From Basidiobolus meristosporus CBS 931.73 (lineage: Eukaryota > Fungi > Basidiobolomycota): a stretch of 64,000 nucleotides of DNA. A program made the translations under genes and the position numbers. This document shows, one piece after another, positions 9,370 through 57,904 of this stretch. The stretch covers positions 24,318 through 88,317 of the forward strand of contig MCFE01000352.1 of the NCBI GenBank assembly GCA_002104905.1. Direction: 5' to 3'. Within the stretch, counting starts at the first letter, position 1, and each line of letters begins with the position of its first letter. The notes under the pieces were generated by a model. The model searched no databases. It saw nothing but the letters and a program-made list of their open reading frames with translations, and was not told the DNA's origin.

Positions 9370-9945
9370 TCTTCTTAGAGATTACAGTATATGTAGTTCA
9401 AGAACTTTGTTCTTTCTTTCAGTATATTGAGGCTTCTATCCTATATTTTTACGAGGACATTCTTTGCCAATGAGAGCATCCCACCAGCCTCATTCCTGTA
9501 GCATCATATTGATCTTCACCTTGCAGACTTGCCAGTTACATCCATCCAGCTTTTGAGTAAATAGAAAATTGCAGAGAGTGACAGCTTAGGGCTCATAAGC
9601 ATCTGTAAGAGTCTTGGAGATATCTGAAGCAACTGGGCAAAAAAGCAGATTTTGTGAATTTCACAAAGTAGTGTATTACAGTTTTAAGTGGTATTTATAC
9701 TGTCCATCATCTTGCCAACTAACAAATGTAAAATATGTCATGAGAGGCCCCAAGGGCATGTGTGCAATGCTTAGGGCTGCTGGGATAGCCTTTGAGCTCT
9801 TCATGTTTTGTGTATTTGATGTTTTGGTGAGAATATATCAAGCAAGTCCCAACAAGGAATTTGGGCTGAACTCTGAGATATTAGACCATGAGCAAGGTAG
9901 CAAAGATAGGCAAGTATCTAGATATAGTTACAAAATTACAAAACA
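9370..9945 (-). mobile_element. Degenerate Copia 5' end (LTR ~9601-9945, PBS, gag N-terminus)
   Basis: On the minus strand a diverged LTR is followed by gcttatgagccctaagctgtcactctctgc and KLDGCNWQVCKVKINMMLQE*GWWDALIGKEC, matching gag at 58285. Confidence 0.85.
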
Positions 9946-11949: not shown

Positions 11950-14007
11950 ATGAACTCCACCGTCAACACCCTAATCCAGGACAAGATAGTCCAACTCGAG
12001 AGCGGCCTTTCGGTCGATGAGGAACAGGAGAGACTTCTAGGTAGGTGGCCTCCCGTTGGTTAGAGTTAGGTGCGGCGAAACGGTTACTGACACTCCGTAG
12101 CCAAGGAATTGGACCAAGTGAGGAATGAGTTGGAGGGACTGGTACCCCAGGGAAGCCAGGAGGGCTCCTCGTTCTCTGCACTCAAAGACAAGTATCTGAC
12201 TTTGGTATGAATCGCGTTGGAACCGATTTTCCTGGAAAGTGGTCGCTTCTCCGGCTTGTAACTCACCAGCCTGTTTTCGACTCGTAGTTTCAGGCGAAGT
12301 TCCGTTTGGAGCAGGACCAGGCTAAGATCCACCGTAAAGCTGACCTGATCGGTCGTGAGCGGGACTCAGGTAAGCCTCCTTCCGCCCCAACCAACCACTC
12401 GACCCACCCTTTGCTCACACCCCGGATCGCCGGGCACCCCCCGAATCCCCCAGTCAAGGCCGACCTATCGAAAGTCTCCGAACTCAAAGGGAAACTTGAA
12501 AACCTATGCCGGGAGCTTCAACGAGAGAACAAGCGGATCAAGGTAAGGGGTCAGCAGAGGAGCGCAATCAGTCGGACCAAGGCCGCTCATCCCGCACGTT
12601 TAGGAGGAGAGCTTGCGCATCGCCCAGGAGGAACAATCGAAGCGGATGGAAATCTCGGGTAAGTTCGAATCGGCCATCCAGGAAATTCGAGTCAAGATGG
12701 ACCAAGACTCCGAGGAGAACCGAAAGCGTGCGGAGGAAAATGCTGCGTAAGACTGCTTGATCGCACTCTTCCTGTGATCCTTGCTGATGTCGGTTTGGAC
12801 GATCCATCCAGGTTGAAGGAGAAGTTCCAGAGCTTCCTGGCGCAGTTCGACCTTAGCGAGCAGCACCACAACTCCATCATCAAATCGAAGAACCTCGAGA
12901 TCCAACTCCTGGAGGCCAAGATCAACCAACATGTGGAATCCACGGCGCAGGAAATGGCCAAGGTACACTTGAGGTTTCTTCGAACTTGGGAGCAATTCGA
13001 ACCTAACTGGACGGAGCCTTTGTAGGCGCAAGCGATCACGATCGAGCTCAGCGAGTCCATCCAACGAGAAACGGAGCTGCGAGAGCAGCTGACCGTGTAC
13101 GTGGAGAAATTCAAGCAGGTAGAAGGGACGCTCAGTCAAAGCAACGAGATCTTCACCACATTCCGCCAGGAGATGGAGCAGGTATTGGTTTTCGTAGGAA
13201 ATCATTGTCGCTGCGGACGCGACTGACTTTTGGAGCTAGCTAAGGAAGAGGACCAAGAAATACGAGAAAGAAAACCTCCTGATCAAGCAGAAATGCGAGC
13301 AAATGAATCGAGTTATCCTGGAGATGGTGGAGGAGGTTGGGCCCTGACGCTAATGAACCACGGATATCTGCTAACCTATGCCCCCTATTCCAGCGAGCCA
13401 GGAACCAGAGCGACCTCGCGGCAAGCAAGAAGAAGATAGGTCAGCTAGAGAATCTCTGCAGAGCTTTACAGGTCCGGTGGTCCCTAATATCCCCTCATCC
13501 TACTCGCGTGCGACTCACCGAACCCTCTCCCCTCATGGATACAGACCGAGCGGAACGACTTCCAAAAGAAATGCGAGCTACTGGAGACCCGTCAAGGCGA
13601 GAAGCCGGACGAAGCGTCGGACGAGGTAAGGTCGCCGCTGGTGGGTCCACGGAACTTTCGGACTGACGAGTGCGCCTCTTCTGTAGGGCAAGCAGGCGGT
13701 GGACACCCTGAAGGGCCTGCTGCAGAAAAAAGCGGAATTCTTGCGGTTGTCGCAGGCGCTGGCGGTAATTAACGCTCACTGGCGGGGATGCGAAAACCGG
13801 TGATAATTAACCACTGACTCTTAGGATGAACGGGAAGCCCTGAAAACCCAACTGAACCCCCACCCATCCACTCCGGATACCCCTAGCGGAGAGGTCGCCG
13901 ATGGTACTGTGCACAAACAGCCAACGCTAGATGTCGGGCCAGCCTACACTGATGCCCAAGAGGCGCTGAAAGGCCTGTGTAATATGATCGAGGAGATCTC
14001 GCTGTAA
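11950..14007 (+). CDS. Taxilin-family coiled-coil protein (multi-exon)
   Basis: KLENLCRELQRENK, ELREQLTVYVEKFKQVEGTLSQSNEIFTTFRQEMEQ, KTKKYEKEN, KIGQLENLCRALQ reconstructed across GT-AG introns. Ends EISL*. Confidence 0.88.
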
Positions 14008-14277
14008 GCCACGGCACCACGATGTGTGAATGGGAAACTGTAGCCTTATAGAAACACAATCCACAGACATATATAAACTCAGTTCGATTTTAATGAAGGA
14101 TACAGGGTTGATAAGGTACAATTCTAAGTTACAGAGAGAGCTTCCCTGTTGAAGGGAACCACTCCTCGGGGTTGGGGGAAGTGAGGGTGGTCGCGATCGG
14201 TCGGGCTACTTGAGCCCGGCAACGGAGTCAGGGCAGAAAAGATGGAAATGCAAAATGGGATGAAGTGTCTTGATGGC

Positions 14278-16061
14278 CTATTTCCATTGTTGTGAAGCAC
14301 CATCTCGCAGTGCCTCCTGGTAGGAGGGTGGCAGCTCCTCGACGGTGGGGTGCGAGGATGATGCCTCGCTTTCTTCAATCATGTAGCCTAGATCAAAGGC
14401 GGATGGCGCCGACGGAGAAACACCCTGGGCCGTCGATGTGCTAGGCCCCGAACTGACCTCCTCCAGATTCTCCACGGGTGGCTTCTCGATTAAGCGGATG
14501 TGAGGTGCCGATGGCTCAGGGTTTGAGGTGCTTGGTGAGCGCATGCTGTGGAACGAGCTACTCCGGCTGTGATTGTTGGCGTTGACTGTGTTGTCTAGGG
14601 AACTAGACCTACTGCTTATCCTGGGAGGGCCGTTCCGAACTGGACTAGAGTGTTCGAGGGAACGAGACGCTTCGTTGGTGATATCATAGATCGCTTGATT
14701 CTCCGCTAGATGGGGGAGAACAACGGTCCAATCCCCCTCCTCCTCGGTTGGGGTCGAATGTGGATCCGTATCCACGATACTCTCGCTATCTTCAGGAGTC
14801 ATCCCAATGATAGGGTATGTGCCGATGATCAGGGGAAACACAAACTCCAGCCGCTTCTTGTAGAAGGTGCTGGGGACGAGGTCAATTTTGACATGGAGCT
14901 CGTAGGAGAAAGAGATCAACGGGGCAGTGATGGTGGTCGGGGGGAGTGAGCGTGGCACCCTGACTTTGGTCTCCACGTGGCAGGACAATGAGGTTGCATC
15001 AATATTTAGTGGGAGCTCCTGGACGAAGACCGCGGTGACTTGCTTCTGCTCATACCTACATTGGGGAGGTTGGGGGGTTAGCCCAATCGCGACAAACACC
15101 ATGAAAGCCACTTACCCGTTGGCCGCGAACTTGGAGAGCTGGTAGAGTTTCAGGTGAATACCTGCAACATCCCGGATCGGCTGGATATGGTTGACGCTGA
15201 TCTTGACCGGAAATGTCTCCCCTAGACAACGCTTAGAAATCAGCGGGAAATTCCCTTGTTTGTCGTCAACCTACGTTACCTTTGGCAAACGCTCTTTTCG
15301 GTATGAACACCTTGCACTCCACCACACCCTTGCTCTTGCGGAAGGTCCCCAGGGTAATGGAAGCTTCCTTGATTTGGTCAAAAGGGCTGAGGTAGATGGA
15401 ATCTTGGGTGTCGATCAGGTCGGAAACAAGCACTGGACAAATCGATCGCGGCGAGAGTGTCAATGGAACCCACGGTTTGTGATGGATGGCACGAAGCGAG
15501 TACTGAATCGACCCTTTGTTTCCCTGAGTGTGAAAAGGAGGGGGGTTAATTCGGGAACTCCTGGAAAGAGATGCAAGGACGTTACGTACAAGATACGATG
15601 TGGGCAAGGTGAAAGAGGCAGAAGTCCCGGGCAGGAGAAATTCAAAGGGGAATTTATGCTCTCCCACGGTCAAAACCGGAGAAGCCTCCGAGTTCCGTGC
15701 CCCGTAAAGCACCAACTCCGTGTTGAACAAAGTCAGGGACTGGGTTTCGTTGAACTTGCTGGAAACATGGTTAGTAAGCAGTGACCAAAGCCGAACCAGT
15801 CAAGTCAGGGAAATACCGCTCTGTCAACGACATCAAGGAGGTGGTGATCTCGCCCACGAATTGAAGCACGATGCATTTGGTCGGGGTGCTGCGAGTCATC
15901 TTAAGGACCACGTTGCCTGAAGAACAAAAAGATGAGCAATGGGAGTTGGGAGGCGGCCCTCAGTAGAAGAGCGTACCACGGACGGCATCTCCAGGGAAGT
16001 AGGTTTTCTCATGATCAACTAGCTCAATGTTCAAACTAGAGCTACCTAGCGTTGACAGCAT
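14278..16061 (-). CDS. Alpha-arrestin (Arrestin_N/Arrestin_C) with a C-terminal PY motif (multi-exon)
   Basis: YFPGDAVRG, GEHKFPFEFLLP, GSIQYSLRA, VFIPKRAF..G, ISFSYELHVKI, FPLIIGT, C-terminal LPPSY. Confidence 0.88.
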
Positions 16062-23693: not shown

Positions 23694-24724
23694 TTATTTC
23701 TCCAATTTTTCCAGAACGTTGACAAACATGTATCTCGAGAAAATGATGTACAGCTGGCGGAACCAAACCAACTGACTTCTGTGGCAGGTCATTGCCTTGC
23801 GGGATGTCATGACCTCCTTGGGGCTGCTTACAAATGCCAATGTCTGCGGAATCCCGTCTGTCTCTTGGAAGAGAGAGCTGATGGAGAAAAGAATGTCGAT
23901 AAAAGTGATGTATTTTCTGACCAGCGGGACTGTGGTCAAAGTGTAGGTGGGGAGGTTATCGAAGTTGTACTTGGCCGAGCTAGCGAGCATATGTCTACAA
24001 TTGAGCCAAGGTGAGTCCAATAGGCGCAGCTACATCAATGGCGTTACAATATTACCTGATGCCGAAATAAGTGGCAATATGGTTGGTGTGCCCCGAGATG
24101 CCGTAGGTGTCGAAAGTCAAAAGCTACAACAGTACGAGTTCATATACGAGTCATGACAGGTGAGGTGAGATAAAGGCGAGATACCATATTGATGTTGTTT
24201 TTTGTGACATAATCTTCAACAGTCTTGGCCACAACAGCAGCGTGCCATATTTTAGTAGGGTGATCAGGCAGCTCCCTAAAGGGGTGAAGCTTAATAACTA
24301 GTGCATGAAGTTTCCGGCTAGCCAGAACACTTACGGGTGGTCTAAAGAATGGACATTCTCTGGCTTAACTCCCAACGCCACACAGCTCTTTACCAGTTCC
24401 TTTTCCCGAATCTCTCCCAATTTGTCGTGGTTACCTTACATTTTTGGTTAGCGTGAGACGGAAAGACCGATAAACACAAAGTTCACGTGTGTATATACCC
24501 TTTGACAAGCACAAAACGTGCACTTCGGTGGATGCTTGTAGTTTCAGAAGGGCAGGGCCAAAAAACATGCACTCGTCGTCGGGATGGGCTGTAACAAGTA
24601 AGACCTTCTTGATCCCATTTTCGGCTAGGGCCTTTGGAGCAGTTGGGGGACGCACTATACAAAACACGTAGACAAAGAAAGCAGGTATCGCCAAGGATAT
24701 CAAGAGTGGTAGAAAGTACTGCAT
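23694..24724 (-). CDS. GPI12: N-acetylglucosaminyl-phosphatidylinositol de-N-acetylase PIG-L/Gpi12 (multi-exon)
   Basis: N-terminal TM, VLLVTAHPDDECMFFGP, LTFDTYGISGHTNH, AMTCHRSQLVWFRQLYIIFSRYM. Confidence 0.93.
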
Positions 24725-28140: not shown

Positions 28141-28622
28141 TTAGCATAGCGCGTCGAAGCAGCAGCAGAGACAGGTACCAAGAGCACTAGATATCGACCA
28201 ACATTAGCATGTTGTTATCTTGCATGAAGTATAGGCGATCTACTTACCATCCCAAGCATAAACCATCATCCTTATCTTGTGGCTGTTGTTGGACAATAAT
28301 GGTTTGCGGTTGCTGCTGTTGTTGTGGTTGTTGTTGTTGTGGGGGATAGTAACCTGGAAACGGAAGGTTTAGTTACAGTTGAGAGCAACGAAGATCATGC
28401 TACTTAATCACCTTGTGGTGGAGGATTGTAAGCGCCAGCAGAGCCTTGGTAGTTGGCAGCCTGTCCGCCATCACCATAATAACCTTGAGCAGGTGGTTGA
28501 GGATAAGGGCTGTACTGAGGCTGTTGTTGTTGACCATATTGGGGCTGTTGGCCATATTGTGGTTGACCATAGGGAGCACCACCTTGAGCAGGGTAGCCTT
28601 TATCTTGAGGATATTCACTCAT
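28141..28622 (-). CDS. CYSTM-type tail-anchored protein (Pro/Gln/Tyr-rich, Cys-rich TM; 3 exons)
   Basis: MSEYPQDKGYP...QQQPQTIIVQQQPQDKDDGLCLGCALGTCLCCCFDALC* from in-phase GT-AG splicing. Confidence 0.85.
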
Positions 28623-29151: not shown

Positions 29152-32100
29152 ATGAACTTCGGCAACCCGCCATACTTTCCTGAGCAAAGTATGCCACAAA
29201 AGACAGTTGAGAGCTCTAGTTTCTATCCTGATTTGGCAAGTTTTCTGTCTGAACTTGAGGTGCCTACTCCTGCTGCTGTCAATGCTCTTCACAGCCTACA
29301 GAAGGAGCCCAGTGGTTGGCAGTTAGCTTCTGCCCTCTTGGAAACGAACGTAGGTCCTTCCATATATCGCCAAGCCTGTTGAAGGCACCGCTAACCGCTT
29401 GGCTTTACAGTCTTCACAAAACCAATTCTTTGGGGCACACACATACCAAATTAAGATATCGAGAGATTGGTAAGTAGATTCAAAGAATCAAAACATGGAT
29501 TCACTTATCTGATGTCTTTGGGATGTAGGGATACATTACCGGAGGATCAGGTTCACCGGCTACGCGAAGAACTTCTAAAATGGATAGTGGAATTCAGCAA
29601 CGGACCCAACCTAGTATTGACAAAACTCTGCCAAGCGGTGGGTAGTTCTCCTACCCAAGCCAGAAACCCACTTTCTCTAATCTTTGTATTTTCCCTGACC
29701 TCCAGTTGACCACGTATGCTTTACGAACCGTCCCCGATCAATGGACCAATTTCATCCCGGCCACTTTGCAGGCTTTAGAATCGGAATCGAAAAACCCTCA
29801 CGGCAGACCTGTGAATAATGAGAACGCTTTCCTGGAGATTTTGACGCTTATTCCAGAGGAGCTCAACCGAGCCGATTTAGTCGGCTCCAAAAAGTAGGGC
29901 CAGAATTTTCACTCCCTCCCTCACTCGCCCATCATAGGTATTCATGCTTTTTGCAGGAGCCAATTCAACCAAGAACTCCTAAACTCGATCCCCTTGGTGC
30001 TTAATACAGTCGGGGCATTTTTATCTGACGACACTCGGACAGACCCCGCCTACGACTTTTTACGCCAAAAGTCTCTCCGATGCTTGCAAAGCTGGATTCA
30101 GTACGGAATCCCTCCAGAGTAGGTGTTGCCAGTTACTTGCTTGCATGGATGAAAAAATTCATGAATGTCTAGCTCTCTAGCCCCCATATTCAACCGAGCA
30201 TTAGATCTTCTAAGGAGGGAATCCACCTTCGAAGCATCTATCGAGGTACTTATCGAGCTATTGACCCGCCAAGGAAGCTCGCAGTATGGCAACACTCTGA
30301 GTGAAAGCTTCTTCCGGTGTATTGCCAGCCCGTGGATGAAAAGCACAACCGAGGCATCTATTAGTGGTAAGTAACGGATCTCCCAGCAATCCTTACCTGA
30401 CTTGGCTTATTGAAAAAAGTTATCTAGAGAGTAATGACGACGTTGCAGCATATCTAGCCCGGCTTCTTACCACCTACGGGGAGGAGTTTACCGAGTACAT
30501 AGTTCAACACCTTTCAAACCCTGACGTGGGAGTTTATCTCGAGATGATGATCGGATTTATAGGCTTTCCAGGATATTTTGCAGCCGACCAGGAGATATCC
30601 TTTCAACAATGTTGAGGAGACGCCATTCGTTTCCACCATTTTTGTGCCTTGACTCCTTGATACATTAGTGAAATCCCGTTGAATTTTTGGTACTTGCTGC
30701 AAGAGAGCATTCTCGATTTGACGATAGAATGCGAAGATCAAGCCATCATTCAGAGGACCAAGACCATCGCTTCAATGGTCTTTTCAAAGCTGGTTCAAGT
30801 CTTGAGGCAAAAGATTGAGTATCCCAGTGAAGAGGAATGGTCATCGTGGAGCAAAGGTGCCTTACCCAATATAGATTCATGCAGTGCTATGTCTAAACCA
30901 TATCAGATGTTAGAGAGCGGTTTAAAATCTATCGGCGCGACGTCGGCGACACTTTGATTAATTCGTACCTCGTATTGCACGGCGAGATGCTGGAGTATCT
31001 ACTGGATCTAGCCGCCACTCAGTTAAGCAGCGATCGTGCCGTGTCTCACTGGCAGGTAAGCCATCCCCTTGCATGGATTGTTGATTTCGATCGGCCTAAC
31101 ACCTGGCAATTAGGACTTGGAGTCAACCTTGTTCTGTTTACGTTCTATATCAGAGGCGGTATCCAGTGAAGATCCACATATCGCCAGATTGTTTGGTGAT
31201 GAGATCCTTGGGCGGCTCCCCGTTCAGGGCCACAACAAGATCCGGTTGACGACACTTCAGATTCTAGGTATCAGTCGTGCGTTGCTAGCCTCCTTGCTGC
31301 ACCTTTTTAAAACACCATAACAGGTTCTTATGCTGACTGGCTCAAGAGACATCCACAGCATTTATTACCCTCCTTGAACTTCATCATCCCTACTCTTTCT
31401 GATCCCGAACTAGCCTTCATTGCCGCCAGCTCATTCAAGGATATCTGTGATACTTGCCGAGCTGAACTGGTGGATGGGGTCGAGTCTTTGGTTACCATGT
31501 ACACGCACATCAGCAGCTCCATTGAGGTATGTCATCATGATTCACGAGGGATCCGGCCTTGGTCCGGTAACTGATGACTTGGGTACCAGGAAAGAGAGAA
31601 GCAAAAGGTTCTGGAATCCATCTCCGCAGTGATTCAAGCTTTACCACCTCGAAAAACTCTCGAGCCACTTTCGGTGAGTGATTGCTGGGCTTCTGCATGG
31701 TGAAAGCGATTCTCATGGAAATATGCGATGTATTGATTAGGTGCTTATCGGGGATATTCTTCAAACCATAACCAAAGCATTCGACGTAGGAAAACAGGCA
31801 GGTCTTTTGGATCCCCCATTCTCGCGTACACCATCTAACCCTTTACCACAGACGGGGAATTTCCTCGAATGTCGACCAGTCGTCCTGAGCCACATTCTTT
31901 ATCTTGTTGCCTGCTGTCGTGGTATCCAGCCACCTGATGACGAACCTACAAACGCCGCAGAACCAGACGAGACCAACGCTGTGCTGAATCTACCCGAAGC
32001 CCAACGGGTCTCGGTTGCCATATGGGGATTGGTTGAGGAGATCTCTAAAGCCTACTGCCAAGACGAAGAGATCATGGAGGTATGCCGGTTTCTCTTCCGC

Positions 32101-33298
32101 CCGCGCCTTATGTCCAAACGAATGACATCTCGATCAATCTAGGCCATATGCTCGCTGTTGAATACAAGCATCATGTCGTCTTCACATGTCTTCACCATGG
32201 GTTTCTCCAATATGGCCAGCTTTTTGCACCAGACTTACCAGAGATACCAACACCCTTACATCCTAGACACCGTTTGCCAGTTGGTTACCGTATATGGCAG
32301 TGAAGAGCAGAACGTCATGATCCTGAGCGAGCTATTGGCTACCCTGACTGGCATTACCTTGGGAAATATTCGAAATCTTCAGGGTACGCTTAAGCAGTTA
32401 TCAACAATTGAGATCGCACAACGATTCTAATCATCGCACACAGGCATGGAGGAGAATCCGCATTTGACCAGCTCCTACTTCGGAATGCTCTCCCGAGTAA
32501 GTCGTCTATATCGGGCATTCTTGGATAACCAGAGTAATTGACCGCATCCACCAGTATGTCCGCAAATGCCCAGTAGCCTTGTTCACCACGCCACCGGACG
32601 TATTCAACAACATCATCCTATTCGCAGTATCAGGGCTTGGGCTGCAAGAACGTTTGGCCCTTCGATCGGGAATCGGCTTTATGGTAAAACCATAGGAATT
32701 GGTTGAGGATCGAGCACCCACGACTAAACCCCCAATTAGGTTGATTTGATTGGCTTGAACACCGGGAACCAGGCCATATTGGATAGCATCGACCACGTGG
32801 TTAATACATTCGGCCAGCAAATCATGCAAGAACTCTTGATGGTAAGAAACAGCCTTTCGTATCTGACGGCCTATCGACTAACAGCAACCTCCATGTGTAG
32901 GGAATTGGAGGAAGATTGCCTCGCTCCTTTGTCACCTTGCTTACGGATCTTCTGTACAAGCTCACGGGAAAATATATCCAGAACTGTCGCCAATGGTTGG
33001 CCATTCTGTTGGCCCAGGTAAGCGGGCTTTTCCTCGAGGTTGCGGCGCCATCCTCCCATCGACTAACCCCTTCCTGTAGGAGAATTTCCCCTCCTCGCAC
33101 ATCGACAAACCCTCCAAAGAGGCGTTCGCCAAGAGCATCATGACGTGAGAGAACCATGGGATTACTATTTGACGGGACATTTCGACTGACATCTCCTCTC
33201 TGTATAGGACACGCGGAGTGAAACGCTTCAAGGAAATCGTGACGGAATTCTCCTTGCGTTGCCGAAGAATGGAGAATAGCGCGTACGGATCCACCTAG
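29152..33298 (+). CDS. IPO13: Importin-13 / transportin-SR-family karyopherin (about 18 introns, one U12-type)
   Basis: LQKEPSGWQLASALL, FWGAHT...KI, VLTKLCQA, FLEILTLIPEE, LRCLQSWIQYG, LNFWYLLQE, ESTLFCLRSISE, KRFKEIVTEFSLRCR. Start codon uncertain. Confidence 0.85.
30595..30663 (+). other. U12-type (minor spliceosome) AT-AC intron, 69 nt
   Basis: Donor ATATCCTTT, branch TGCCTTGAC ~11 nt from the end, terminal AC. Removal gives ...GYFAADQE|ISEIPLNFWY in frame; retention hits TGA at 30613. Confidence 0.88.
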
Positions 33299-36614: not shown

Positions 36615-37571
36615 ATGTCTGCTACTGCTAAGTTTGTTGCTGCTTCTGCTAACGAAGCTGCTGATAAGCCCACTGGCGCTAACTTGTACGCTCGTTTCGC
36701 CTTCGCTGGTGCTGTCTGCTGTGGTGTTACCCACGGTGCTCTTACTCCAGTTGATGTCGTCAAGACTAGAATCCAACTTGAGCCCACCGTCTACAACAAG
36801 GGTATGGTCAGTGGCTTCCGTCAAATTATTAAGAACGAAGGTGCTGGTGCTCTTTTGACCGGTTTCGGTCCTACCTTCTCTGGATACTTCCTCCAAGGTG
36901 CTTTGAAGTTCGGAGGTTATGAATTCTGGAAGAAGACCTTCATTGATGTCCTTGGTCTCGAGACTGCCTCCAACAACCGCACCGCCATCTACCTTGCCTC
37001 CTCTGCTATCGCCGAGTTCTTCGCCGATATCGCCCTCTGCCCCTTGGAAGCTACTCGTATTCGTCTCGTCTCCCAACCTTCCTTCGCCAGTGGCCTTATC
37101 TCTGGCTTCTCCAGATTGTTGAAGGAGGAGGGTGTTGCCCGTGGTTTCTACTCCGGCTTCGGACCCATTTGCTTCAAGCAAATCCCTTACACCATGGCTA
37201 AGTTCGTTGTTTACGAGCGTGCCGCTGAGGCCATCTACAAGAACCTTGCCACTCCTAAGGACCAATTGAGCTCTGGCTCCCACACCGCCGTCAACCTTAC
37301 CTCTGGTTTGATCGCCGGTATCTGCGCTGCCATCGTCTCCCAACCCGCCGATACCCTCCTCTCCAAGATCAACAAGCAAAAGGGTGCTGAAGGATCTGTC
37401 ACCAGCCGCTTGATCGGTCTCTCCAAGGAGCTCGGTGTTAAGGGACTCTTCATTGGTCTTGGTCCTCGTATTGTCATGGTCGGTGCCTTGACCTCCCTCC
37501 AATTCGCCATCTACGGTGATATCAAGAGAGCCCTCGGAGCCACCGGTGGTGTCGAAATCACCAAGAACTAA
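36615..37571 (+). CDS. MIR1: Mitochondrial phosphate carrier (SLC25A3 family)
   Basis: [68 protein letters not shown]; intronless with strong codon bias. Confidence 0.95.
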
Positions 37572-49800: not shown

Positions 49801-50736
49801 GAAAACTCACCATCTTGCAAACTGCTTAGTAACTACCAAGATATTCTTTAAGAATTATTCTAGGTCAAGAATTGATAGACTAATGTGCGATTAGGCGCTG
49901 AATTAGATATTTACGATCTGCTCAAGGACAGAAAACTCCAAGATTTGTATACTATGATCCAAGTGACTAAATCACGTGAATATTTAGGTGTAGTTACGAA
50001 ATTTGTAACAGAAACTTGCGAGCTGTCCTTGATAGGATGCATATTTGCTTCCAAATAACAAATCGCAGAGGACATAGTATTCATCAGGAGCATATAGAAG
50101 CAAATTATTAGTTTATGCAACATATATGTATATAGCCCAGAGTATTCTCACCAAGCTTGTCAATAATCCAATACGTATGTTAGCTCAATGTAGTTATTCA
50201 ATGCAATTTTATTAGTATTGACGAAGTTTGATCATCAATCTTCAACTTAACAGGCCACATTGCACATCATTATCTCTGTAAATCACTTCATTCCACCAAC
50301 ACTCAACTCTAGTAACCCGAAGTCTCACTCCACCGGGAAGAAACTATACTGATCTTCTAGTATAAACAACCGATACAAAATATAACCTATCAATTAAGAC
50401 CAGTTTACAGCCTTTTAATATTCGACGGTGTTGGAGAGAGTACTCCGGAGAAAAATGGGGCATGTAGCCCAACGTTTTGGCTAAAACGAATTTCTTTATG
50501 TATGAGAAACCGCATAAATATTAGCGGCATTATAGTTGAGAACTAGTATTGGCGGTACGGGTAGGAATTTCCCAATATGGGAGTTGAGGGGCGTAACACA
50601 TACTCTGACACTAAGATCGAGATATGAAAATGCATGCACAAAATCGTTTGCATGATGAGTGTTAAGGATATGCCGTTTCAAATAACATGTGAAACTGCGT
50701 GTGGGAATTAAATTTGTATCTCTATACAGGTTGATT

Positions 50737-53700
50737 TTAGGCAGATCCCTTGTTTTTCTTGCCCTTAGGAACTCGGGCCAGCCAGTAGATGAAGACCGCT
50801 GCGAAAATATTGAAGATGATATACACCCACATGAGGCCAAAGTTGCGCCACGCATCTTTGTAGTAGCTAGACACTGAGGCAAGGAAGGTATCCGTCGAGG
50901 AAATGGTGCAGAAGGAGCAGCTATCAGTGGCATTGGGGTCCAACAGGTAGCCGCCAGCAAAGCTCGTGTAGGTGGACATGTATTGACCGCAAGTCATGTT
51001 ACTCGGGGGCTTGAAATGTAGGTACTCAACAGCTTCGCAGACGGCACGGGTGCCGGAGACACCTGTCGAGAGCATTGCTGAGACCAGATACGTGAACGGC
51101 GACACTCGGTACATGAAAATCCAGAATCCAGGTAGGGCATCAGGAGAGGCGAGGACACCGCAGAAGATCAAGCATAAAGAGAAGAGCAAGTTGGCGATAT
51201 TACCGCCAGTTTCGGCCAGCTCGATGCCTGCGATGATCATATGTGCGAAGGTAGAGGTGAAGAGAAGGAAGGTCAGGATAAGCAGGAACATAAGGGCTCC
51301 GCGCTCACTCACAGCATTAGTGGGCTCGGCATTGCGGTACAGGCCAATGGGGTAGTACCAACAGACAAAAATGAGGACAGCCATGAGAGTATTCCAGGGC
51401 AGCTCGACAATAATATTGGCGGACATAAATGCTTGCCAGGAGTAGGTCTTGGAAGGTCTTTCACGGACCTCGTACAGAGAGCGTTGAGTACAGAAGTGAG
51501 GCATAATTTGCTGAACAAGGTTACCGAAGATGGTCATAAGCATGAAAATACTGAACATCTGATTCTGAAGTCCTTGGAGACTGTTCTGTGCATGGAAGAA
51601 GGAAAATCCAATGAACAAGGCGGTAAGGACAGAAAGAGCTGCCTTGGAGTAGATATACACAGGGGTACGCCAATATTGCGCGAAAATTCTGACCAGGCAT
51701 TCATACAGTTGAGTAGAGAAAGGAGCAGCGAATTCCTTGAAACTGTCAGGATCAGAGGCAGAGTTATCAACAGCCTTTTGGGGCAGCGTTGATTTCAGTT
51801 CGGCTAAGTGGTCTAGCACTGCTTTGTGTTCAGGGCTATCACGCCAGACAGCAGGCCAATCAATATCACTATGAGACCCAGGAGCAGCACCAATAACATC
51901 CAACATCCACTCGGCGGGGTTCGCATCAGCGGAGAGTTTAGGAGCACCGTTTCTCTCGAAGTAGCTAGCAAGGACACAGGACTTGTCTCCAATCTCTCCA
52001 AAATAGACAGTTCTTCCACCCTTGGCGAGGAAAAGTAAGCGGTCGAACCGTTGGAACAACATGGCAGATGGCTGGTGAATGGTACAGAGAATAGCCTGAC
52101 CATGCTTGGTGAGAGTATCAATCAGATCAAGAATAGACCAAGAAGTCTGACTATCAAGACCAGAGGTAGGCTCATCCAGGAAGAGGAGTAGTTGAGGCTT
52201 GGCAGCAAGTTCAACACCGATCGTCAAACGTTTACGTTGTTCAACGTTGAGACCTTCACCAGGAACTCCTACTACAGCATCTGCATACGATTCCATTCCC
52301 AAAAGCTTGATAACCTCCTCAACGTAGTCAAGTTTCTCTTGGCGAGAAAAGTGCGCAGGCTGGCGAAGGATGGCACTGAATCGAAGAGCCTCTCTGACGG
52401 TGGTAGTATAGAGATGAAGATCTTGTTGCTGCACATAACCGGTTTTTCGCTGGAAGGACTGATCGCGGAGCTTGCCATCTACCAACATCTCACCAGTTAC
52501 AACACCCATTGTAACACGTGTGGCCAAGACATCGAGGAGTGTTGTTTTACCAGCACCGGAGACACCCTGTAGAAGTTAGTAAAATATTCGAATATGATTG
52601 AAGATAAAGGAGCTCACCATAAGAGCGGTGCAGGTACCGGGCTTGACCCAACCATCAACATGGTCTAGAATGCGGCGGGGCTCATTCTTGATTTTAATAT
52701 CGTAACACACATCCTGCCAATGGAAGATTGCAGTTTGTTTCTGGATACCAGTCGAGTTTTCACCGCTATTGGGATTGCTTGGCTTCTCAACAGAAGCTTG
52801 ATGTGTGTTGGCTTCAATGTCATCAGCATCCTTCACAGCAGGCTGGTGGCCACGACGGAAGAGCAAGACTTCACCCTTGGATTTCGCCTCGGAGATGTAT
52901 TCTGAAGCAAGTAGATAGGTGCACATGAAGAACACCATAAAAGCGAACATGATGCCCAAGTTTCTCCATTTGTGGCTGTTGTAGTAACGGAAACTTTGCT
53001 CCAAATAATCGGTACCCATAACCAGATTGGAGCCGGCAACAGCGCCAACTGTAGAGCAGACCTTATTTTCAGGTAAGACACTATCGTAATTACCTCCCGA
53101 AGGAATGAAAACGGAGCACGGGAACGTCCGACCATGGAACTCGTTGACCATGAAGCTCTCGAAAGCATACGCAATAGGGTCGATATAGTTCATCCAGCGC
53201 GACCAGCCAAGCATGTTGCGGGTTGGGATAGTGAAGCCAGTGTATATGATCAGTCCCAAGATAAGGATTGCTGCTGGTACCAAAGCCTGAGACAGGGTGC
53301 GAGAGGTGGCAGCGATCGTACGGAAGATCATGGACATGGTCAATGTAGTCACAATGGAAAACAGCAAGAACACGAAGAATGCGCCTGGTTCACGTCGAAG
53401 GTTGGTCATGAAGTAAAGTGTGATGTTGAATATGATGGCATTAAGCAGCTTATACGGCATATCACAGATCATGGACGCGATGGCTTCAGCAAACGGATGA
53501 TAAAGAGCGTAGCGTGTATGTTTTTCAACGATAGGACGTTGTGCGTACAGGGTCAATATCTCGAGGGCACTGGCAAATGCGTTAAGAAGTACCGCGAAGA
53601 AAAGTAAGGCACCACGGGGATAGAAACTAGAAGTGTCGTTAGGCAAATTATAGAAAACACTTCCAATAATCAGCGCCATAATGAAGTTGCCGATCAACTG

Positions 53701-55367
53701 TGAGAGAGTTAAGCTGGCATCGCCTCTCAGACGCTGGAATCCACGTGTAACACAGAGTTTGATTTGATCCCCGACAGAAATGGTGTAAGGCGACTTGACT
53801 CGCTGGCTCTTTGCCTGCATCGCCTTACGTGATTCGATGAACTTTCCAACAGATTCCCCACCGATCGGATACGCTTGCTCGTATTCCTCGATTTCCCTCA
53901 TCAACTTGGCGTAAGCTTTACTCTTTTTCCAGGCAGCGGCAAACTCATCAGGTGTGTTGGGGACTTGACCCTCGAATCCGGGCTTGATGATACGCTCCGA
54001 GGGACTGGTAAGCGAGGTCAGGAAATCGGCAGTCGTCTGACGTTCGGGGCACTCGAATCCCATGGTTGTGAAGAATTCCCTGGCTTCATCGGTACGCCCA
54101 AAATAGATCTGACGCCCTTCGTATAAGACTGTGACTTTATCGAAGACGTCGTAGGCACTCTGTGAGGCCTGGTAGATGGCCACAGCGACTGTGGCGCCTG
54201 CATACTTAGACATCAAGCTCAACGTCTTACAAAACTCCAAGGCATTGGCACTATCCAAACCTCTGGTACTGTTATCCCAGCACTGGATGGGGCTACCACT
54301 CAGAGTGGCCTCGGCAATACTGACACGCTTCCGCTCACCACCACTGACACCACGGACAAAATCGTTACCGACTCTGGTATTGATGGTGTGTGAAAGACCC
54401 AGCATGGCCATGACGACGTCTCTCATGTGCTCTGCATACTGTTGCCTAGTGACGCCAGGAAGTCGATTACGAGGGGCTCGGGCAAGAGCCGCAAATGTGA
54501 GAGTATCTCCAACGGTTAATTGAGGAAAATGGACATCGGTCTCTGCTGTGTAGATAGCTTCACCACGAAATTGGCCTTGCATCTGCTTGACAGAGATACC
54601 TGGGTTCTATTAGTCACGAGTGGCTTCAAGTTGCTCACAAATTAGTTCTACCTTGATAGTTCAAGTGGGATTTCTCATCCAGGTGAATACCGTTCATCTC
54701 ACCGGCAATGGTCTTAAGGAAGGTTGAGCAACCACTGTGAAGAGTTAGTATTGTCAGACTCAGAATATAGACCATTGGTTACATACCTGCCAGGTCGACC
54801 GAGGACAACGAGCATCTCTCCGCTCTTGACGAGGCCGTCAAAGTTACGAAGAATCTGAATCTTCTGCTTGCCAGTGCCAGTAATTGAACGGAAAATACTG
54901 CCGATCTCAAGAACAGTATTGGCGACATCCTTCTGGTAGTCCGTGGGACTGCCATAGCCATGAATGCTGAGATTCTTGAAGGATACGCCTGCAGTTCGTT
55001 TTGGATATCTTTCTGGGTCCCGTGACTGAACAGACAGCAAGTTCTTCATCCAATTTTTGGGCTTGAAGTTAGGATCGTTGGGGTTCAATGTAGAATCATC
55101 ATTTGGTCCGATGAATGGATTTTCGACTTGATTGTCGATAGAATATCTGGTTGACTGGCGAGTCAAGTGGCGTGCAAGACGAGTAACCTCCTCTAGAATG
55201 ATCGCTTCGTTGCCTACTTTTTCTGAATTCCCAAAGACGGTATCGGCGGTGCTCGCATTGGAACCCACTTCATCTGCGAGTTGTTGTAATCCGCCACCTT
55301 CCACAGGCTCGTGGGGATTGCGTTGCTCTACGCTCAAATTAGGATTAATCGTCCCTAACAGAGACAT
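50737..55367 (-). CDS. cdr1B: Full-size PDR/ABCG multidrug transporter, Aspergillus Cdr1B/AbcG1-like (introns 54735-54786, 54600-54651, 52567-52617)
   Basis: NBD1-TMD1-NBD2-TMD2. VLGRPG|[33 protein letters not shown]|[40 protein letters not shown]-terminus [46 protein letters not shown] matches my recollection of A. fumigatus Cdr1B. The symbol means 'like'; orthology is untested. Confidence 0.9.
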
Positions 55368-56317
55368 TGTGAAGAAGAAAAAACGTTAAATTGTAGAGTG
55401 GATGAAGTACGATGCTCTCCAGGTATATCTATATATAATATATTCATCAGATCCCACTAAATGACGAAAGGCGATATCAGGGGAACGGAGAAACTAATAA
55501 TCTAATGAATGAACCAGATGGAATAATTGGGTTATGTAGATAACAAGTTGGGTCATGATACGGCGAATCGGATTGGCTGAAGTAGGAAAAAAGGGTTTTC
55601 TGTTGCGGGGGAAAACTGGAAAAATGGATTATTATAGCGGATTTCGACCGGAATTGCTTCAAATGAATCTAAATATTTGTTAAGTTACACGCGCTTTCCA
55701 CACCCGAAATGAATACCATCATTGCTTCCGAGTGCTGCCAAGAGTTCATCAAGTGCTACAGATAGTCAATTCCTAGAGTCTGATGGAAGAGAACAATGCC
55801 ATGTGGAGGGTGATGGGTGATGGGCGATGGGCGATGCGTTGTTGGTAGGTGATCAGTAATTGCCATATTGGTGTCATATCCGCAATTTTATCCCGGGTCA
55901 CGTACGACTTATTTTCCGATTATCCTTACTGCCAGCATGTGATATTCATTCGCTAAAGGAAACATCGTAGATAATGATGGGATGTCTTAAACAACACAGG
56001 TGCGTAGTTTAGCTGAAAGACCTGTTTCGTTCTCTATGTAAGCGGTGTACTATACTTTAGCTCTACAACTGACAGAGGAGGTGTGTAGAACAGACTAAAT
56101 TAGCATAGCAAATAAGATTCTCGTAATGATTACACAAATCACTCTTTATTTTTGATCGGAAACTATTTTAGTAATTCAGATCATTATAAGAGTAAAGTTT
56201 AAAGCTATTCATATTGGCCCAGGAATGGCTAAACTTTGTGTAAACATTCCAACTGTGCGGTTTATAGATAGTGTATATATTTTTGTGGTAAAAGAAATAG
56301 CCATAAGGAGTCTTGGA

Positions 56318-56335
56318 ATATATATATATATATAT
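56318..56335. repeat. (AT)9 microsatellite
   Basis: atatatatatatatatat. Confidence 0.8.
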
Positions 56336-57308
56336 GCCTCTAGGTGATCAAATGCGAGCCACATTGAATTAACCTTTTGTCAATTACTCTACCAATCTGG
56401 CTTAAAATCACCCAAGAGGGATATCTTTTGATTAAGACTATTGCGTGTTTCATTGACGGTTGAGGGGGCGTTTGTATTCGTATCAGTATTTGATATAGAA
56501 AAGATAATATATGTAGCATGAAAGTATGTGAAATACAACGTCTGAGAAGGCGAGGTGTATTCTGATGCCAGCATTGATCACTGGTTGATCGTTTTGCATG
56601 CCAAACGAATTTCCCTATATCAAATTTGATTAACCATCCCACGACACTGCCTAGAAGTATATCGAGTAGTTATGACGAATGTTCAGGCAGTAGATACTCA
56701 GGTAGACTAATGTTATTGTAGCCTCCAGTTTAATTTCAAAACCCTGAATCTCCAAGGCTGCAACAAGTCTTGGTTCATGGTGCATGATTAGCTAACCGAG
56801 GGAAGAGAAAATCTCATTCATCAATGGATTATTTGTTGTACTATGGCGTTGCAGCATACTACAATGGAAAGTATACATTCTTACCAAAACATTCTATACA
56901 AGGGTACGCATATGAAAAATGTGGGGGAATAAGGTCTTGTTCATTCAATCAAATAGGTGGGTACTTGAGGTAGCTCCAGCTGTCCATTTTAAGTTACGCC
57001 TCCTTGATTCTGATATCTAACCTTCAGATGTAACATCGAAAACTGAGACATAGTCGGGGAGGAGAAGGAGAGCAGGTATATATGCGGAGTACCCCAGACT
57101 TTACAAATCAATTTGGTAAAATTTCAAAATGCTACTAAGAGGCTCCCTCAGGTAACTGAAGAAAATGATCCACGCTTTCTATTTAACTATGGTCAATTCA
57201 TACTCAATACTTCAATACCTGCTAACCATTTTAGGGACAACAGCAAGCCAGCCCAAGAACAAAAGTTTTGTAGATCTTATTAAGGCAATGGAGTAAAGCG
57301 GGATTTGC

Positions 57309-57904
57309 TGTTGTAAGAGTCTAGGAGATATTGGAAGTGATTTGGAGAACAAGTATATTATGTGGTTTTCACTTGATGATTTATTAAATGTAGAAGTAGT
57401 ATTTATACTTTCACATGGTCTTGACATAATGAGCACGTAGAGTAGGTTTAGGAAAGTCCCAAGAGCATGTATGCAGAGTTTGGGGCTCTTTGGATAACTT
57501 ATCAAATTTTCATGTTCTAGGTACCTGATGTTTTGGTGAAAATATTGTAAGTCCCAACAAGGAATTTGGTTAGTATTCTCTAAGATCTGTAAGTGACAAT
57601 CTAAGTGACTAAGTTAGGTGAATATTCAGGTGGAATTTGAATTTTACAACACTCCCACTAAACTAAATGCTCATACCAACCAGTCCTAATCTTGACTTAA
57701 GATATTCAAATTTGTCTCTAAGTAATGGATTGGTAAATGTCTGCAAAGAGTTCATCTGTAGGACAGTAAACTAAGTTAACTAAGTTATTCTATATAGCTT
57801 CACACATGTAATGAAGTCTAAGTTATATATATGCTTAGTTCTGGCATGAAAAGTTGGATTTCCACCTAATTGTATACATTCTTGATTTTCTTGAAGTAAA
57901 GTAG
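57309..57904 (-). mobile_element. Copia 3' end remnant (RNase H end, PPT, 3' LTR 57309-57651)
   Basis: Minus strand LVYCPTDELFADI, then tttagtgggag PPT, then TGTTGTAA...TTACAACA LTR. Cut at 57905 by an oppositely oriented copy. Confidence 0.82.

Follow-up and report, generated by a model that had tools for sequence, protein, structure and literature searches.

A very probable U12-type AT-AC intron in an importin-13/transportin-3 family gene of Basidiobolus meristosporus

The stretch of Basidiobolus meristosporus DNA analysed here (64,000 nucleotides, referred to below as the window) carries at 29152-33298 of the forward strand a karyopherin gene of the importin-13/transportin-3 family, and between exons 7 and 8 of this gene lies what is, judging from its sequence, very probably a genuine U12-type AT-AC intron of 69 nt in phase 0 (30595-30663, + strand). 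The identification draws on the splicing signals of the segment, on the reading frame that its removal restores, and on a counterpart in Basidiobolus ranarum, and it bears out the reading proposed in the initial annotation of this DNA. With it, one more member is added to the many minor introns for which this species is already known.

The assignment of the gene to the importin-13 family, also made in the initial annotation, is upheld by domain and structure matches, among which human IPO13 is the best. Precomputed Pfam matches to the public 980-aa product comprise Xpo1, Importin_rep, TPR_TNPO3_IPO13_3rd/4th and Importin_rep_3, in agreement with the domain set of the family (IBN_N, Xpo1 and TNPO3/IPO13 TPR repeats); when the exons were searched singly, weak matches to Xpo1, Importin_rep and TPR_TNPO3_IPO13_4th only were returned. 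Exon 8 (30664-30856, + strand, starting ISEIPLNFWYLLQE) is supported by its alignment to IPO13 and by comparison with B. ranarum. Its residues 2-63 align with residues 357-413 of human IPO13 (E 6e-7, PDB match), and in the PDB search it matched IPO13 and the fly orthologue Cadmus only, whereas exon 11, likewise searched on its own, matched IPO13 and TNPO3 about equally. Exon 7 (30428-30594, + strand, ending ...GFIGFPGYFAADQE), delimited by its open frame, its splice sites and the B. ranarum comparison, gave no significant IPO13 match against solved structures, either as a single sequence or as a two-species profile, and consequently the ungapped join of exons 7 and 8 is not seen against distant homologues. 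Owing to the poor conservation of exon 13, a large protein search with this exon yielded nothing beyond a spurious repeat protein and a fragment of 86 aa, and a protein atlas comparison recovered a general karyopherin resemblance only.

A model of 20 exons was built for the gene from open frames, splice-site quality and the comparison with B. ranarum, with the start and stop of the public model retained. It is free of stops, encodes 998 aa, and contains 18 GT-AG introns of 47-68 nt in addition to the single AT-AC intron, so that all 18 of the remaining introns conform to the earlier statement that the other introns of the gene are GT-AG. Its longest exon encodes 113 aa, and for intron 10 either 31268 or 31277 may serve as the donor. 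Just upstream of the gene, at 28141-28622 on the minus strand, the window holds a gene call of 120 aa that belongs to no Pfam family; it overlaps an open frame in which Q, P, G and Y abound (QPQYGQQ-type repeats). Another neighbour is an intronless gene at 36615-37568, by which the window was matched to contig MCFE01000352.1 of assembly GCA_002104905.1; 20,957 bases of this contig proved identical to the window. On the contig the importin gene occupies 53469-57615 and the AT-AC intron 54912-54980.

Each of the sequence features by which U12-type introns are recognized is found at 30595-30663, namely the donor, the branch site with its spacing, the AT-AC termini and the conservation of these signals across species. 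The 5′ splice site, ATATCCTTT (30595-30603, + strand), was compared with the pattern /RTATCCTTT and matches the U12-type AT-AC consensus at 9 of 9 positions. The branch-site motif CCTTGAC (30647-30653, + strand) places a putative branch-point A at 30652. From there to the final base of the intron is 11 nt, inside the interval of roughly 10-15 nt ahead of the 3′ splice site in which a TCCTTRAC-like sequence was sought; as GCCTTGAC the motif matches TCCTTRAC at seven of eight positions. The 3′ end, read directly from the sequence, is AC (30662-30663, + strand), within TAC. Upstream of the intron the codons GGA TAT TTT GCA GCC GAC CAG GAG specify GYFAADQE, and downstream of it ATT AGT GAA ATC CCG specify ISEIP, so that excision joins ...GYFAADQE to ISEIPLNFWYLLQE..., while retention would add six codons and then meet an in-frame TGA (30613-30615, + strand). 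The coordinates and sequence details of the initial annotation (the 69-nt length, CCTTGAC about 11 nt from the end, the terminal AC and the restored frame) are exact, and the stop that it expected upon retention is the TGA just mentioned.

Motifs of this kind also arise by chance. The donor core RTATCCTT occurs 8 times in the window where 5 occurrences are expected, and chance would produce about 0.1 composites of a donor, a branch site and an AC or AG end spanning 150 nt or less in each 64 kb, both strands included. Since the motif pair is not very rare by itself, the case rests on where it sits, exactly at the point where the reading frame breaks, and on the fact that B. ranarum has kept it. 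Other RTATCCTT sites, at 24700, 50671, 47815, 14103 and 31444 on the minus strand, were rejected as candidates, as they have no fitting branch site or coding context and look like chance occurrences. Three minus-strand ATATCCTT words, at 24693-24700, 31437-31444 and 50664-50671, have no fitting branch site plus AC end within 150 nt and are probably chance matches; one of them sits antisense within the importin gene. No clear coding context surrounds a composite on the minus strand running from 14103 down to 13581 (GTATCCTTC...CCTTGAC...AG), which likewise gives the impression of a chance occurrence. The G+C fraction of the window is 0.53-0.55 at 12001-16000, compared with 0.36-0.49 elsewhere.

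When the open frame that covers exon 8 was used for a word search, a single relative came back, the partial B. ranarum protein K7432_008069, and no transcript-derived fragment. The protein is encoded on contig JASJQH010007306.1 of assembly GCA_040143965.1 (L002 in the coordinates below), and this contig ends within the gene. Metagenome scans for relatives from other lineages found none. In the B. ranarum orthologue the boundary between the codons GAG and ATT is likewise interrupted by an intron (L002 9864-9940), with a length of 77 nt compared with 69 nt in B. meristosporus. This intron starts with ATATCCTTT and closes with TAC, and the A of its TTCTTGAC is again 11 nt away from the end, so that the first 9 nt, the sequence CTTGACT, the 11-nt spacing from branch site to end and the terminal TAC are identical in the two species. 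The interior between donor and branch site matches at 28 of 51 positions, with several gaps, while the DNA of exons 7 and 8 is about 76-78% identical and the protein 84-85% (85% for exon 7, 84% for exon 8). In exon 7 the identity continues to the last codon, and of the codon changes 25 are synonymous and 8 non-synonymous; ISEIPLNFWYLLQE at the start of exon 8 is identical in B. ranarum. The mostly synonymous exon changes, taken together with the diverged interior, indicate that coding constraint is lifted at the AT and returns once the AC has been passed. As far as the alignment of the two sequences tells, what the species have preserved within the intron is confined to the U12 signals and their spacing. 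Retention in B. ranarum would also shift the frame, as 77 is not a multiple of 3, and would meet a stop. At the level of the gene, all nine intron positions that can be mapped in both species are shared, and the eight apart from the AT-AC intron are GT-AG in both.

These data bear directly on the possibility that 30595-30663 is not an intron at all, and that the gene is a pseudogene or encodes a truncated protein with motifs that came together by chance. The chance expectation of about 0.1 motif pairs per 64 kb leaves some room for this, and the public annotation of B. ranarum does end a gene model at a stop inside the intron; however, the flanking exons are under purifying selection (50 synonymous and 18 non-synonymous codon changes over exons 7 and 8 together), the open frame persists through 13 more exons beyond the AT-AC intron as far as the public stop, and the motifs and their spacing are conserved where the interior is not. 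Hardly any credence can be given to this explanation.

The major spliceosome might instead remove the segment within a GT-AG or GC-AG intron of greater length (30583-30705, or 30611 to 30736 or 30742), which would yield a protein shorter by 18-21 residues around the junction. Such introns exist as in-frame, stop-free options, and the public product length of 980 aa can be reproduced with them, either by 30583-30705 or by 30611-30742 combined with the shorter intron 10. Yet their donors (GCCGAC and GTTGAG) are poor, and their sites are not conserved in B. ranarum. The shortest of these options, 30583-30705 and 30611-30736, cost 18-19 codons, and what they delete includes ISEIPLNFWYLLQE, which is aligned to human IPO13 as well as being identical in B. 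ranarum. The GT-AG pair 30611/30668, given as an example in the initial annotation, is out of frame, and the contention made there that no good GT-AG alternative exists stands up in view of the codons that the in-frame options would remove. The GT-AG options moreover differ between B. meristosporus and B. ranarum, and the AT-AC intron is the only solution common to both. A longer major-type intron is accordingly very improbable.

The argument from product length is weak. The public product is 18 aa shorter than the 998-aa model, a difference equal to 54 nt of intron, and no fewer than 46 single changes to the model yield 980 aa, of which two replace the AT-AC intron and 44 lie elsewhere in the gene. 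An attempt to deduce the public model from its length of 980 aa was rejected on these grounds.

The third alternative accepts the AT-AC intron and assigns its removal to the major (U2-type) spliceosome. U2-type AT-AC introns are an established class, but they are not known to carry a ATATCCTTT donor or, at 10-15 nt from the end, a branch site of the TCCTTRAC kind. The intron at 30595-30663 has the one as well as the other, conserved in two species, which makes splicing by the major machinery extremely unlikely.

Under the preferred reading, a U12-type AT-AC intron, a course of splicing can be proposed from what is established for the minor spliceosome. The 5′ ATATCCTTT of the intron would pair first with U11 and afterwards with U6atac, and U12 would pair with CCTTGAC, leaving the A at 30652 to bulge out as the predicted branch point. 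The short distance from branch site to end would then select the AC, with cleavage after it, 11 nt downstream, and the GAG (E) codon would be joined to ATT (I). From the literature on this species we infer that the 30594/30664 junction is used in mRNA and that the required snRNAs are present; an Rfam search of the 64-kb window itself found no snRNA. The suggestion that the intron might rate-limit a nuclear-transport factor is speculation by analogy to mammalian work.

The practical value of the finding lies in the correction of gene models. The B. ranarum annotation makes two genes out of a single karyopherin gene (L002 8404-10508 on JASJQH010007306.1), with the split exactly at the AT-AC intron. 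The upstream model (L002 8404-9929, 400 aa, with IBN_N and Xpo1) reads through the donor and stops at a TGA (9927-9929) inside the branch-site motif of the intron, and the partial model K7432_008069 sets in at L002 10001, with the first ATG that exon 8 offers. The earlier prediction that standard gene predictors would mis-model this gene thus holds for B. ranarum, where the annotation is split at the intron, but for B. meristosporus it is suggested by the difference between 980 and 998 aa; the public model of this species may lack 18 residues. If that model does mis-splice the 30595-30663 intron, surveys based on annotation would not have counted it. Minor introns frequently go without annotation (Larue and Roy 2023, PMC10639083), and the annotation-dependent minor-intron counts published for Basidiobolus are probably too low.

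That this fungus has a U12 system, as the initial annotation concluded, is correct and already published (PMC10639083, PMC11347168). Larue and Roy (2023) counted 249 minor introns in B. meristosporus, or 0.554% of its introns, the highest density in fungi (PMC10639083), and Olthof et al. (2024) reported 237 minor introns together with genes for U11, U12 and U6atac (PMC11347168); the U4atac of this species is a divergent, low-confidence candidate only (PMC11347168). The presence of the system in B. meristosporus is hence no discovery, and the picture of the fungal minor spliceosome is unchanged by the intron described here.

With respect to the origin of the intron, IPO13 and TNPO3 were not found in the mouse and human minor-intron lists within the part of the supplement text of Olthof et al. 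(2019) that was covered, so that, as far as this part goes, the mammalian orthologue is apparently not a minor-intron gene. On this ground it might be suggested, tentatively and as a rather unlikely reading, that the minor intron was gained or kept specifically in the Basidiobolus lineage, at a position that carries no minor intron in animals. A rare fungal gain of a minor intron would be conceivable on the same ground, and also because Basidiobolus exceeds the density reconstructed for the wider group. Alternatively, the intron may be ancestral, retained here and lost or converted in other lineages.

The intron at 30595-30663 closely resembles the minor introns already catalogued in B. meristosporus, with which it has in common the ATATCCTTT donor, the AC termini and, at 11 nt from the end, a branch site of the TCCTTRAC kind. 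Its setting is likewise similar, as it stands as the one minor intron of an old housekeeping gene, among numerous GT-AG introns, in the same species. A second likeness is to the minor introns of mammalian karyopherin-beta genes, which encode members of the same protein superfamily; in the part of the Olthof et al. (2019) supplement covered, the mammalian lists contain IPO4, IPO5, IPO9, IPO11, XPO4, XPO5 and XPO7. Among the entries in that part, the IPO9 intron has a ATATCCTTT donor and the branch site TTCTTGAC, and the minor introns of IPO9 and XPO4 have branch sites of the TTGAC type, as does the intron of the Basidiobolus gene.
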